A stretch of DNA of 63,739 nucleotides, counting the filler, from Klebsormidium nitens (lineage: Eukaryota > Plantae > Klebsormidiophyceae), in NCBI GenBank assembly GCA_000708835.1. It is 5 parts of 5 records of this genome, joined end to end, with 100 filler letters (N's around TTAATTAATTAA, not from the genome) between each part and the next. Parts side by side here need not be neighbours in the genome. Positions count along the whole stretch, not along the records: positions 55,959 to 59,073 come from DF238608.1; 4 more parts are not named here. One strand, written 5' to 3'. Under the pieces are notes generated by a model. The model was given only the letters and a program-made list of their open reading frames with translations. It searched no databases and had not been told where the DNA came from. Positions 3,001 through 59,173 of the stretch are shown here, in pieces. The position numbers and the translations under genes are program-made. The number at the start of each line of letters is the position of its first letter. Position 1 is the stretch's first letter.

Positions 3001-6000
3001 CTCTTGAGGATCCCAATACCCCTTCCCCCGTCTTTGCCCCAACCGATACTCGACTCTTTCCCCAGGCAGATAACCCAGTAAGCAGTGTTACCCCAGCGGC
3101 TTCATCGGATAAAACACCGGGGGCTGTGGACACCGGCGTGCTGATGTCAGCGAGCGCGCCGCAGGGTCCAGAGGGAACGGGGATCGAGACGGATGATATC
3201 ACTGGTGTGGCTAACGAGGGGCCAGGGGGGGACTCGGCGGAAGGAAGGCACGCGGTTGGACTGGGGGCGCTTGGTGCAGCTGCTACTGCGCCCCCGGCGG
3301 GAGGGCTCTCAGTCCCTCCTCCTGAGGTCTTGGCAGAGTCTTCCAGTGGACCTGCTGAGGAGCCGGGGGCCAGGAAAATGACAAGCGCAGGAGACCCGTC
3401 CTTCGAGGATGGGGTGGCGGTCGAGGAAGAGCTGCCTGTTTGGCAAGGGCAGCGAAGCGGAGGAGAGCAGCCAAGCGAAGGAGAGCAGCCAAGTGCCCCA
3501 ATAGAACGGCCGACAGCCCTGGACGACGAACCTGCTGACAGTGGTGCGGTGCCTGGGGAAAGGACGCCGGAGGAGGGGTCTTGTCCCGTCTCTGTTACAA
3601 ACCCTGCGGCAGTAGAAGAACAAAGCACAGCAGCCCTTGTCCAATTAGGCCAGGAGCCCAGCATCGGCCAGTGTGAAAGGGGCGGTGTCCAGCGGAGAGA
3701 TGCGCTAACAGCAGAGGAGGAACGAGAGGAATTGCCTGACGCCAGGCAAAAGGGCCCCCCTGAGGCACCGGCACAGGGGGCGCCTGAAGTAGTTGCGGCG
3801 GGGTTAGCCGACGGTGCTCCGGAGGCCTTGGCTGGGACGCCGAAACAGAATTTGGTTCCGCTCCTAGTTGCTAGGCTGCTGCCAAGCCCTACGGAGCTCT
3901 TGTCAGAATCTCTGGGGCCGGTGGGGGGTAATTTGACCGCGCAGGAGAGGCGCGGTCTAGACCTGACGGCGCTGCTTAAGAAGGGGTGGGAGACCGATCG
4001 CTGTCCTGCCCACCCTAAGCTGGTGGCAGCTCGGATCTTTTGCGTGGACTGCTCCGGTGCGGAGGGTCAGGGGATGCCTTGCTGCGCAGCTTGCAGCAAG
4101 GGAGATCACAGAGGCCACTTGGTTTTCGACGTGAGCAATTTAGAATGTCTTTCGTAATGGGCTTGATTGGTTCATCCCTAACGTGATGGTGACGTTCTTG
4201 CTGTTCACTGCACTTTCCTGGTTGAAGCGATGGATACGTTTTGAAACTGGATTGTGGGGGTTCCACATGTTGTGCAATGTTGCTTTCGCTCTTGAAGCAG
4301 CACAAGTTGAGTCCTTCAAAGCTCGGACGAATGAGCACCACTGACAAAGATCGCCCTTCAACCCGTGCAGATCAAATACAAAGACCGTGAGTGGCTGCTG
4401 GTGATGGACAATCGGCGCAACCTGAACGTGTCCGACCTGCCCTGTAAAGTAGTTGGCAGCGCAACCGGGGTGCGGATCTGGCCTCGAGAGTCTGCACGCC
4501 CGTCGTCTGCAGCCCTAACCTGCAAGGCCTGCGGTGGCTTCCTGTCTGCAAGGAGCGAAGAGCAGCTTGTCTTCTGTTCGTTGCAGTGCAAGGTGCGCTC
4601 CGAACACAGCCCGACACGCCTGCTTTTGTGCCCTTCTTTGGCTTTCGAGACTTCAGGCTTCAGACTCCGCCTCTGTTCCAACATGAGCTTGCACTCCATT
4701 TGAGTCCCAGACTGTTGCACACCCCTTTCTATGGCCTAGGCGGACGATGAAGATTGTCACCCCAATCAGACCGTCGAAGCACATTAGTTAGCATGCTACA
4801 ACACAATTAACTTCATTCTGTTGTTGTTGACAAGACTTTTTGAGTGCGCTTGTCCGTTTTCGGATGGACAAACTTCTCTTGTTCTGCCAATCCACAGATT
4901 GGAACTGGATGCTCTTGCAAGTAGTCATGTGCTCACAGGGCTATGAAAAGCTGCGTTCCCACTCACCTCCTGAGAGCATCCCTGTCACTTGTGTCAGCAA
5001 CCCTCGCCGGGATCACGTCAGACAAAGCAAGCGTTCATCTCAGGCCGCTTGTTTCGTTTGCAGATGGCAACCAACCCGAAGGCACTGCTGACCACAAGTG
5101 CGGCCGATTGCCACCTTCCCCAAGCAGAGCAGACGCAGTCAAGTACGCCAGCAGAGGAGGAAGCCACAGAGTCCAGAACGGCAGCTGGCAGGAACGGGGC
5201 GGGTCACATTGTCGCAGACGGAGGCGTGGACGCTGCTGAATTGGCTGACGCTCTCAACATCGCCGATGACGTCAGTGAAAGAGTTGCTTCGGAGGCCCCG
5301 GCGAGGGCAGCTGATACCCGGACGGACAAGGGGGCCTCTGCTGCGCGCTCACTTAGCCCGTCGGACGCCGATTGGCTGGATACGGTGCTGGAGAAGGGGT
5401 GGGAGAAACCGTGTCGTGAGCATGCGGGGGGCAAGCGGCTGTTCTGCATTGACTGCGCGCACAAACCAGGCTACGAGCGCCCAGTCTGCGCTCAGTGCGT
5501 CAAGAAGGAGCATGAGGGACACAGGGTTGTGAATGTAAGGTCTCCGGTGGATTTGTATTGTACGTGAGAGTGTAGAGCCGTGCTGCCACGCCTAAGGTTT
5601 GGCCTTGCACTGGCTTGGCACTTTTTGACAGCTACTCAGGTCCAACTCAAACAGCATTTGTTAATTCAGTTCCAAATGCAAAGACTTCTCTGAGCATAAG
5701 CGTGCGTTTGAAATGCTCCGAATGCTAACCACGCAAAGTCTCCTGCAGCTGTCCCCTGGCCATTGGTCCGCCGACTACTGGCTGCTAATGGACGGCGTGC
5801 ACGACCTCGACGTGTCCAACGTCGCCAGACGGAAGACAAACAATGCAGCAGAGAACTCGAGCGGAGCGGTGATCTGGCCGCGGGAATCCGAGCCCAAGAA
5901 CCAGACCTGTTTCAAGTGCAAAGGCTGCCGTCGCCTGGCCATGGCGCGCGGGTGCGTTCAGAAGAAGGAGCCGGAATTCTGCTCGGTACTCTGCAAGGTG

Positions 6001-55958: not shown

Positions 55959-56514
55959 GTCCCTGTTCCTCCTCAGGGAACACCAATGGCGGCAACTGTC
56001 TCTCCAGCGGTACAGGCGTCTGCTCCTCCTGCCCCTGCCCTGCCTCAGGGATCATCGACCTTGACACAAGCTTCTCCTGCCCCTGCCCCGCCTCAGGGAG
56101 CATCGACCTGGGTGCCAGCTTCTCTTCAGGGAACACCGATGGCGGCGCCCCCAGCGGTTCAAGCGCTTGCCCCTCCTTATTCTCCCCAAAAAGCAACGCC
56201 TGCCTTTCCTTCAACCCAGAAAAGTCTTCCTTGTTCATTTCAGCAATCCTTCTTTCTAGTTCATCTATGTGCCGCTCCTGTGAATGCATGGCGTCAAAAA
56301 GAACTTGCACCAACCCTTGATTCAAAATAGGCATATATCTTGTGTGAATCTGTCGAGACCGTTGTGGCATGGTTTTGGGAAGAAACTCCAATACCTTTTG
56401 AGATAGTTTTCCATAATCTTCCCAGATATCACCTTCAACCTGTCTCCTGCTACAGAAACGTTGCAGACTCTTTATTTCTGCAAGATGCTGTATGTTGTGA
56501 ACTTCATCTTTCAA
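55959..56514 (-). CDS. Hypothetical protein with short coiled coil and PEAGQGQE repeats; 3' end in gap
   Basis: Open frame; duplicated RSM(L/I)PEAGQGQE and PP(S/L)VFPEE. Confidence 0.45.
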
Positions 56515-57196
56515 ACCTGCAAAACAACATCACAAACATTATCATAACAAGGATGACATTGTTCTAGCAAGTGCTGCATGCTTTGAACTTCATCCTTCAA
56601 ACCTGAGACACAATATCACTGGCCACTGGCAAGGGTTCAATCTTAACGCTTAATATTTCAAGACCCAACAACAAGTATAGACATAAAAACCATGATCGGG
56701 GTTGCAGAAAATACCAAATAAGAAACTTACCTTCAATGGCTGCTTTTACTCTAGTAGCAAAACCATCGCTTTTGGGTTTCTTGACTGCAGAAATGCCCGC
56801 CATCATAAAACCTGAGCAAGGTGTAGACTATTGACAGTGAGCTAAACACTACATAGATTGCAGTATGTGCTTGTATACGTGCAGATCTCCATGGGAATAT
56901 ATTTTGAGCGGGAGATACATATCAGAGAGTCATCCAGAACTGGTTGCAGAAGAAGTGCTCAAAATTTGTGGGGAATGGCTGGCCATAAAAGATGAAGCAT
57001 AGGTTGAAAGCTCTTGTGCTACAGTATCCATTGCTTCCGGTAAAATGCATGTCACCTGAGCGGGTATCCCCTGGCAAAATAGAGCAAATCAAGAGCTGCA
57101 GGTGAGAAGCACCAATCTGAAAACCAACCAAGTGGCGTGAATGTTACTTCAGTCCCTACGTTTGGCGATTCTTCAAACGTTGTGTTCTTGCGCTCA

Positions 57197-57722
57197 GGCT
57201 CTAGTTTCACTAGCGGCGGACGGCACAAGCTTTTCTTTTTTAAATTCGCTGATTGGCTCCGGCTACATCGGAACATCTCTACCGCGCTTCCACTAGCGGT
57301 TGTGCCGGCGGAACTCGAATAAAATTTGATGACGTAAGCGGCACAACAACTAATTAAGTTCGACCCTAGTGCCACCTTGGGTCGAACTAAATTGTTTTTG
57401 TGCCGGCCTCCCATGTGGTCCGATGGACCACTCACATAGCGCCAGGTCCTCAAGTTGGCGGGCACATTTCGCGCCAGCTACGGTGCACTCCGCAGAGTCT
57501 GCACTGGCAGCACAACTGCTCTTGACACATCTGTGGTTTAGGGGTTTGCCTGCCACCGTGGCACGTTTGAGACTCTTGTGCCGGCGGTTGTGCCGCGACG
57601 CAGTTTCACTGGCGGCCGGCAGAACTGCAATTTTTTCGCATTTTTTGGACTTCCGCGCAAGTTCCAGGCACCAAATAATTAAATTTAATGTTGTGCCGTC
57701 CGCCGCTAGTGAAACTAGAGCC
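57197..57722. mobile_element. 526-bp MITE, PIF/Harbinger-like
   Basis: Perfect 32-bp TIRs GGCTCTAGTTTCACTAGCGGCGGACGGCACAA (57197-57228 and 57691-57722); TCA target duplication at 57194-96 and 57723-25; internal TTGTGCCG motifs. Confidence 0.9.
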
Positions 57723-57949
57723 TCAGTGTTCCAGTGCTCCGCAGTCTGATGCAATTTTGCACCGAACAACGAACGATTAGGGTTAAGATCTCAAACGGTT
57801 GAGATTTGCTCGAGTTTTGACCAATCAAGATGCGCCACTGGACATATCTAGACAATTATGAACCGTCGATTTATACGGGTGCAACATGTTTACGTCACAT
57901 GACATCAACTAAAATACGACTGGTCCTACGTGCCCTGAGGGTGTGCAGC

Positions 57950-58655
57950 ACAGTAAGCATCATATTTGCAACTCTTCATCGTAGACTACCTCTACTTAAG
58001 GCCGTATTCGTTTGGCAAGCAGCTCATTCCCAAAGTACGGAGTCTCAGCCGCCCCTTCCCTTTCAGCATACCCTTTCACCTCGGATATTCTACCAACCCG
58101 GACCACAGAATCCCTCCGGATTCCAAGCTCTAAGCCACAGGTGGCTACCCCCGGACAGAGTGCTCCTTTACAAGACAAAGCGCCTCAATGGCAAACTACA
58201 ATGTCTCGGAGGGCATGTTGCGAGGACTTCGGAAGGCGGTCCCCAAGCAAGGGCAAGTTACTCTTTGATATAGGTACGCTTCTGCACCTCTGTTTTTGTT
58301 ACAGTTTTCGTGGAAAGTGTCGCCTGAGATATGTAACGCTTGAAGATCTGAATGTGCGTTTAAAACCCCTTGAAAATACTCAGAATGTACTGTATGTTCT
58401 AATTATGAGCATCACTTGTTACCGACTGGAAGAGTGGCTAGTACTGTCCTAAGCTTGCCCCATCAACATACGGTATGAGACCTCCATCAAAAGGCCCAAC
58501 TTCGAGCTTCCCTGAAGCGCAATTGCACTTTGTGCAATGTACCAGCGTCGCTTGGATTTGGGCTGGAGGTCTATGGCATGGCATAGGAGCATCGGTATTT
58601 GTCCACAAAAAGGAACAGTATTCTTCAGTACCCAGTTCCTCTGGTTAGGTTCTGC
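57950..58655 (+). pseudogene. Possible highly decayed Fanzor-like relic
   Basis: Broken fragments in Fanzor order: LSPRIFYQ, LRGLRKAVP..VTL, EEWL..S*ACP, WHR. They sit directly upstream of an omegaRNA homologue. Confidence 0.35.
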
Positions 58656-58785
58656 CTACCAAGGACGCTGGGCGGCTGAGGGATAGCTAGTTAACTCTGG
58701 TATTATTGCTATTCATCGCCTTTTCTTGTGACCCCCATTTCACAACGGGGCGACAGTTTGGGCGAAAATGGTAATAAAGGTGCAA
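58655..58785 (+). ncRNA. Second Fanzor omegaRNA-like scaffold
   Basis: Shares GGATAGC, AACTCyGGTATTATT, GGGCGACA, TTGGGCGAAAAyGGTAATAAwGGT with 47915-48049; the differences preserve pairing. Confidence 0.75.
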
Positions 58786-59173
58786 TAGGGGCACAGCACT
58801 AATCAAATAGATGTGTTTATTGCTACGTCTTTTCAGCTTCCTCAGGTGCAATCGGTCTTCAAACTAGCGTTGTTTATGCTCTGCCTTTCAATCTTTCTGA
58901 TCTGGTTTGCAGAAAACAACAATTCAAAAGAAATCGAGTATACATGGTTGCAATGTCTTTGTGGTTGCTGAAGAGATTATACTTGGCAGAGTCGTCAGTA
59001 AGATCAAGCCCGTGCTGGAGGTGAAATATTGTGAGCGCTCAATTCATTGTATCAACTCTCCTGCAGATCCCCCNNNNNNNNNNNNNNNNNNNNNNNNNNN
59101 NNNNNNNNNNNNNNNNNTTAATTAATTAANNNNNNNNNNNNNNNNNNNNNNNNNNNNNNNNNNNNNNNNNNNN

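Follow-up and report, generated by a model that had tools for sequence, protein, structure and literature searches.

A recently inserted TA/TIR transposon with a conserved terminal hairpin in Klebsormidium nitens: a possible orphan omegaRNA-type scaffold

Background

Does a structured stretch of Klebsormidium nitens DNA represent a guide RNA that has outlived its nuclease? The DNA analysed here (the window) is 63,739 nucleotides long, filler included, and joins five parts of five records of assembly GCA_000708835.1; the stretch of interest lies in the part from DF238608.1 (positions 55959-59073). A preliminary description read 58655-58810 as an omegaRNA-like RNA that has kept its pairing while a Fanzor nuclease upstream decayed, and suggested its use in trans by an intact Fanzor. 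The latter idea is already published for Spizellomyces punctatus, in which 134 'ghost' loci of ~550 nt were found, with 30-nt inverted repeats and no ORF (Saito et al. 2023, PMC10432273). The Spu scaffold spans 75 nt across the 3' inverted repeat and is followed by a 14-15-nt guide derived from the flank. In human cells, SpuFz1 works with ghost omegaRNAs, and a repertoire of ghost guides used in trans was proposed (PMC10432273). Here we ask what kind of element carries the structured stretch of K. nitens, whether its pairing is conserved, and which explanation fits it best.

Results and discussion

A recently inserted 476-bp element

The element and its insertion site comprise the following features:

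58297..58298, no strand: left copy of the TA target-site duplication (TG here; TA at the other copies and at the empty site)
58299..58774, + strand: non-autonomous MITE-like transposon, 476 bp (raised contig depth, differing flanks, orthologous locus empty)
58299..58324, + strand: left terminal inverted repeat, TTACAGTTTTCGTGGAAAGTGTCGCC (inverted-repeat search)
58749..58774, + strand: right terminal inverted repeat, also the 3' arm of the terminal hairpin (inverted-repeat search and arm alignment)
58775..58776, no strand: right copy of the TA target-site duplication (empty versus occupied site)
58777..58797, + strand: host flank past the TA duplication, starting AAGGTGCAATAGGGGCACAGC (same as the unoccupied site of a relative)

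Copy number and flanks were assessed by aligning contigs of four public runs to the window piece 55959-59073. In these contigs the stretch ~58299-58777 is multi-copy in the source organism, with sharp ends and with flanks that differ on both sides. Two metagenome contigs (L001 and L002), reached via the sole homologue of a neighbouring minus-strand exon, represent the orthologous locus of a close relative; they are 89-94% identical to the window and lack the element. The empty site of the relative reads ...CTGCACCTTTGTTTT[TA]AAGGTGCAATAGGGGCAC..., in short form GTTTT[TA]AAGG or GTTTT[TA]AAGGTGCA, the stretch around the TA being TTTT-TA-AAGGTGCAATAGGGG. The occupied site of the window reads ...GTTTT[TG]TTACAG...AAAATGGTAA[TA]AAGGTGCA..., with GGTAA[TA]AAGG at the right. 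Comparison of the two sites delimits the element to 58299-58774 (476 bp), with a TA duplication. Junctions of other copies read TTA/TTAC, and the left copy of the duplication has mutated from TA to TG in the window. The terminal inverted repeats are imperfect and ~26-30 nt long (arms 58295-58324 and 58749-58778, 30 nt, 77% complementary).

With respect to a possible TAM, the left flanks of three element copies have only a T before the TA in common. The DNA left of 58297 is host sequence common with the relative. On the right, at least 26 nt of flank match the empty site of the relative exactly, and other copies diverge from the flank onward; the 3' flank that the preliminary description calls different is ordinary host DNA. 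End and duplication models of Helitron, piggyBac (TTAA) and PIF (TWA) type fit the empty and occupied sites less well than TA. The element is a recently inserted TA/TIR non-autonomous transposon, a conclusion that we regard as solid, and it was inserted after the split of the source lineage from the close relative. The insertion lies at the loop edge of a 9-bp palindrome, TGCACCTTT-GTTTTT-AAAGGTGCA (58283-58298 and 58776-58784; L001 ~600-640); the two flanks in the window show 7-nt complementarity because this palindrome existed before the insertion.

Matches of ~97% identity to the element also come from a soil metagenome and from a run that bears the name of another organism; across runs X6-X11, such matches extend to soil and sludge metagenomes and to runs labelled as four other organisms. 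Compared with the flank of the relative, which is only 89-94% identical, this could reflect horizontal spread, perhaps viral, or the presence of the same organism in the samples. An exact search for a 22-mer from the element end found nothing in collections of viral sequences, prokaryote genomes and metagenomes. A degenerate pattern of the inverted repeat had 58 matches in metagenomes and 7 in viruses, all of them attributable to chance, with no extended similarity.

The surrounding piece (55959-59073) is eukaryotic in look and has 47.5% G+C. A gene with apparent introns occupies 55959-56806 on the minus strand, starting at 56806. It has no Pfam domain, contains a duplicated 48-nt exon-like segment (56486-56533 and 56572-56619) as well as a PEAGQGQE-type repeat, and has a single database homologue, a JGI hypothetical protein of 94% identity. 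A second, unrelated MITE lies at 57198-57721 (524 bp, 36-nt inverted repeats that are 97% complementary, 5-bp duplication CTCAG); it belongs to a multi-copy family, is absent from the locus of the relative, and has deep contig cover from an RNA-labelled run. A 56-nt stretch (56887-56942) is likewise present in the window and missing from the orthologous contigs of the relative. The relative carries a MITE of its own (L001 3985-4376), ~390 bp long, fully palindromic and flanked on both sides by TTAAG, with a terminal repeat (CAGTTTTCGTCGAAAGTGTCGCG) that resembles that of the window element.

Two hairpins at the right end

Three regions of secondary structure were recognized within the element:

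58478..58576, + strand: central imperfect palindrome, in the interior earlier taken for coding remnants (inverted-repeat search, folding)
58614..58692, + strand: hairpin 1, 34 bp including 6 U-G (folding energy versus shuffles)
58703..58777, + strand: terminal hairpin 2, 25 bp including 4 G-U (MFE and centroid; corresponds to stem B plus the inner stem of the preliminary description)

In the 75-nt hairpin 2, the right inverted repeat forms the 3' arm and pairs with an internal partner. The last 3 bp involve the TA duplication and the first base of the flank, and the hairpin stops where element and flank meet. The 91-nt stretch containing it folds at -29.4 kcal/mol (z -2.87; 1 of 200 shuffles as good). 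Hairpin 1, immediately upstream, is stronger, at -39.0 kcal/mol on the plus strand (z -4.56; 0/200 shuffles as good) against -26.5 on the minus strand (z -2.50). Hairpin 2 shows the same preference (-29.4 on the plus versus -21.0 on the minus strand), as do the two hairpins together (166 nt, -69.9 versus -47.9), and the arm alignments contain 10 G-U versus 3 A-C. The interior of the element is rich in hairpins and the fold of the entire element has a z of -5.07 (0/100 shuffles as good); a comparable hairpin is present at the right end only, the left end having a z of -0.65. Replacing letters with the majority letters of other copies did not improve the internal folds, and there is therefore no sign of constraint on the central palindrome. 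Rfam covariance models gave no relevant match at E<=1 across the whole piece, and ARAGORN found no tRNA in it. Contigs of one RNA-labelled run (X14) cover only 58380-58610, and contigs of this kind cannot reveal small RNAs or RNA ends.

These folds agree with the preliminary description in part. The complementary segments listed there do exist (TACCA 58657-61 with TGGTA 58698-702, 58703-13 with 58767-77, and CCCC 58732-35 with GGGG 58747-50), and stem B and the inner stem are paired in both the predicted MFE and the centroid structure. The TACCA/TGGTA stem, by contrast, is absent from every predicted fold. TACCA pairs upstream instead, within the 34-bp hairpin 58614-58692, so that an RNA starting at 58655 would cut a helix; the proposed interval 58655-58810 begins inside hairpin 1.

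Homologues and a giant-virus-like contig

A 78.6-kb giant-virus-like contig (L068-L076, JGI Ga0590114_0001856) comes from the same samples as the close relative. It encodes a Prim-Pol/D5 helicase, topoisomerase II, the RNR small subunit and an mRNA triphosphatase, as well as dNK, SET, ATG8, KilA-N, TBP and kinases, and it contains one copy of the hairpin-bearing repeat, adjoining an IS630-type HTH fragment. This copy, homologue V, occupies L071 9579-9656 on the minus strand; L071 9578-9607 is identical to the right repeat at 27 of 30 positions. The HTH fragment is a 73-aa ORF located ~350 nt inward of homologue V on the opposite strand, and is recognized by HTH_28 (E 4.9e-6; 27 bits, which exceeds the cut-off) and by HTH_Tnp_IS630 (E 3.9e-4). 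Near homologue V neither a DDE domain nor a second element end was found, only this fragment. The HTH fragment, the TA duplication and the inverted repeats together suggest that the family belongs to the Tc1/mariner-IS630 group. In ~71 kb of the contig, the called genes include no Pfam family of Fanzor/TnpB type, and no Fanzor/TnpB was seen near homologue V, near homologue S (described below) or in the window piece.

Several other features of these contigs may be mentioned. L075 carries at 4100-5550 a tandem array of about six copies of a ~235-bp unit, in gene-dense surroundings of the giant-virus-like contig. L001 4374-5767 and L068 9452-10865 are 90% identical in the TBP region, the similarity starting exactly at the right end of the palindromic MITE of the relative; this junction, seen in two samples, may be a boundary between host and viral DNA (an endogenous viral fragment), or else a chimera made in assembly. 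L001 4663-5316 (P0002) encodes a divergent TBP-like protein with best matches of at most 73%, the nearest named one being the TBP of Klebsormidium nitens at 54%, and its sequence hints at a green-algal or viral affinity.

Homologue V folds into a comparable terminal hairpin, which ends ...GGTAATAA, and has CCGGTA where the window has TGGTA. A second homologue, S, comes from a soil metagenome (run X6), and its last 30 nt are identical to those of the window. Because MAFFT places the repetitive 5' arm out of register, base pairs of V and S were matched to those of the window with a script, by distance from the 3' end. Compared with the window, the outer 10-bp stem of V has five changes, four of them on the 5' arm and the fifth on the 3' arm; all 10 pairs remain standard, with A-U replaced by G-C in one fully compensatory case and wobble swaps in three others. 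Such retention of outer-stem pairing occurred in 0.06-0.65% of simulated random histories (p 0.0006-0.0065). Further inward, both bases of pair 11 differ in V (U-A to G-U), C-G / U-G swaps affect pairs 17 and 18, and a G-U/A-U swap occurs elsewhere. In homologue S, a quite different 5' arm still pairs with the identical 3' arm, and the inner stem is CGCCCG/CGGGCG, as named in the preliminary description. V and S, two independent homologues, thereby display changes of the type listed there. The outer and middle stems of hairpin 2 are kept in both V and S, and nearly all one-sided changes across V, S and the window are tolerated on the plus strand only. Among near-identical copies, the listed differences in hairpin 2 all lie in the apical loop (58740, 58743, 58745/6).

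Two observations qualify this picture. First, the folding energy of homologue V has no strand bias (-29.2 versus -28.6). Second, the window copy lacks pairs that V and S have kept, at positions 12, 19-21 and 26-27 from the 3' end; it is therefore the most eroded of the three and may be drifting. The conclusion that the terminal hairpin favours the plus strand, and that its pairing is conserved with compensatory and wobble changes among three family members, is solid.

A possible orphan omegaRNA-type scaffold

The explanation that we prefer is that the hairpin is an orphan scaffold of the omegaRNA type on a ghost element, usable in trans by a Fanzor/TnpB-type nuclease. It is plausible but unproven, and we would place its probability slightly below even. 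According to this explanation, 58299-58774 would be a non-autonomous cut-and-paste transposon of the Tc1/mariner-IS630 type, inserted after the lineage split, whose last ~165 nt (plus strand) are predicted to fold as two hairpins, the second stopping exactly at the host junction. The right end would encode a structured RNA, which would be transcribed outward into the flank and presumably processed. If the hairpin is indeed an omegaRNA-type scaffold, the 'guide' would be the DNA beside each copy, i.e. 58777-58797 for the window copy. Carrying no nuclease of its own, the element would be used only in trans, by a Fanzor/TnpB-type nuclease that is encoded elsewhere and that would bind the RNA, cleave and support homing.

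This reading is based on the match of the architecture to the S. punctatus ghost system, on the strand bias and on the pairing-preserving changes. The presence of Fanzor1 mariners in algal giant viruses (PMC3627910), together with that of homologue V on a giant-virus-like contig, can be counted as additional support. The geometry of the right end, as far as the predicted fold goes, is that of a scaffold plus guide. What survives of the omegaRNA-like label in the preliminary description is thus a nuclease-less, pairing-constrained right-end hairpin running into a unique flank; the decayed nuclease does not survive. On the other side, no Fanzor lies near the homologues, the element has no similarity to the Spu scaffold or to Rfam families, V lacks the strand bias, the window copy has lost pairs, and V lies ~350 nt upstream of, and antisense to, an IS630-type HTH fragment. 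The position of V beside a transposase HTH fragment also fits a role related to the transposase.

If the hairpin is transcribed and loaded into a Fanzor, the element would constitute a second, unrelated lineage of gene-less elements that spread guide RNAs, which would support the view that eukaryotic RNA-guided nucleases use a genome-wide repertoire of orphan guides. The empty site of the relative would then be a natural target for homing. Should Fanzor play no part, a DDE transposon with a base-pair-constrained RNA at its end would in turn call for an explanation.

Other explanations

The strongest competitor of the orphan-scaffold explanation is that the terminal hairpin is a feature of the Tc1/mariner-IS630 family itself, independent of Fanzor and inherited by the short element. 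It could give rise to an outward regulatory or antisense RNA (like IS10 RNA-OUT), or act as a single-strand structure at the transposase-proximal end. We consider this unlikely, while granting it real weight. In the one longer family member seen, the HTH ORF lies downstream of the hairpin end, and the space between the two is too small for a nuclease gene; no Fanzor is detectable in the sequences examined; and the pairing constraint and strand bias would suit any functional single-stranded fold. However, no DDE cut-and-paste transposon is known to need an encoded end hairpin. The hairpin is ~350 nt from the transposase start and does not overlap it, whereas RNA-OUT does overlap, and a stem whose end coincides exactly with the element/flank junction is the hallmark of omegaRNA/reRNA scaffolds (PMC10432273, PMC10530073).

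Alternatively, the hairpin may have no function: as in many palindromic MITEs, an internal inverted copy of the terminal repeat would have produced it as a neutral side effect, and the apparent covariation would result from shared ancestry and transition bias. Consistent with such an origin, the reverse complement of the repeat can be aligned with the 5' arm of hairpin 2, and the relative's related element (L001 3985-4376) forms a single long palindrome with a z of -11 to -16; several pairs of V and S are gone from the window copy, and the comparison is limited to three homologues. Neutrality nevertheless sits poorly with the outer 10-bp stem, in which all five substitutions preserve pairing at the simulated p given above, with one-sided changes that are nearly all viable on the plus strand alone, with the confinement of the listed hairpin 2 differences among near-identical copies to the apical loop, and with the absence of a matching hairpin from the left end. 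We therefore regard it as improbable.

A broader version of the RNA explanations is a long shot: the constrained, outward-reading hairpin might act as the guide-type RNA module of a Tc1/mariner-IS630 family that shuttles between an alga-like host and its giant virus, serving either a Fanzor in trans across both genomes or the DDE transposase as its partner. If the hairpin does work with the transposase, an RNA partner of a DDE cut-and-paste transposon would be previously undescribed.

Finally, it is very improbable, and on the sequence evidence already contradicted, that a Fanzor gene decayed in place just upstream and left its own omegaRNA behind, so this reading is rejected. TnpB-like snippets can be recognized by eye in the plus frames ('YVTLEDLNV' at ~58330, 'CTLC' at ~58527 and 'HRY' at 58590), but the broken Fanzor-like fragments reported upstream gained no statistical support in any search. 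All stop-to-stop fragments were compared with Pfam, NCBIfam and PHROGs, and three fragments with PDB (phmmer), in each case at E<=10 and with no match; a word search returned no candidate, and the window ORFs have no exact match in public assemblies. An exhaustive phmmer search of the 68-aa piece next to the hairpins against 1.84 billion representatives returned only three repetitive proteins, by summed weak repeats, and these were rejected. The C-terminus of MmeFz2 (Fanzor2; supplement of Saito et al.) aligns no better than shuffles in any frame, and neither RuvC nor zinc-ribbon similarity was detected in any frame of the interior. In place of the 'HRY', which resembles a RuvC-III motif, all other copies have HQY (58594 G>A). 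The defined ends, the TA duplication, the palindromic interior and the host DNA left of 58297 argue that the element moved as a gene-less 476-bp unit. What had been taken for a nuclease decayed in place is thus a TIR/TA element with interior hairpins and no trace of Fanzor/TnpB.

Comparison with known systems

The demonstrated part of this analysis is a well-delimited MITE with a conserved end hairpin; the ghost concept itself is already published for S. punctatus. The closest parallel is ghost Spu-1 of that species. Both elements are ~0.5 kb long and ORF-less, with ~30-nt inverted repeats and a TA duplication; both have a ~75-nt structured region that runs across the right repeat to the junction, and many copies with different flanks, and for both, use in trans is hypothesized. 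SPu-1 of S. punctatus is 2.1 kb long, with 33-bp TIRs and a TA duplication (Bao & Jurka 2013, PMC3627910). However, the window element comes from a different organism, and its sequence is not similar to that of the SpuFz1 or Ghost1 scaffold; it is predicted to form one long and one upstream hairpin, whereas the 75-nt Spu scaffold forms two small hairpins. Membership of the Spu-1/ghost family was considered and rejected, the element end and the neighbouring MITE repeat being absent from the locus files of Saito et al. A resemblance of GTTTTC...TGTCGCGCG to the SpuFz1 scaffold, noticed by eye, is not significant.

A second parallel is provided by the Mariner elements of algal giant viruses that carry Fanzor1, Mariner-2_PGv as well as Mariner-1_OLpv (PMC3627910). 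They resemble the present family in the TA duplication, the TIRs, the giant-virus setting and the IS630/Tc1-type HTH beside a family member. They differ in that no Fanzor ORF lies by homologue V or in the ~71 kb of the giant-virus-like contig, and in that the window copy is a 476-bp gene-less derivative.

Stowaway-like MITEs, which are non-autonomous Tc1/mariner derivatives, share with the window element the small size, the TA duplication, the TIRs, the high copy number, the insertion polymorphism and the strong secondary structure. Unlike them, the window element is asymmetric, with a base-pair-constrained hairpin, favoured on the plus strand, at one end instead of a simple end-to-end palindrome.

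The last group includes the omegaRNA/reRNA of TnpB (IS200/IS605-IS607) and the fRNA of Chlamydomonas, with 20 extra fRNA copies in C. reinhardtii (Jiang et al., PMC10530073). A right-end scaffold, a guide taken from the flank and stand-alone copies are the points of likeness. Those systems, however, are either without TIR/TSD or linked to Helitrons, whereas the window element is of the DDE-type TIR/TA kind.
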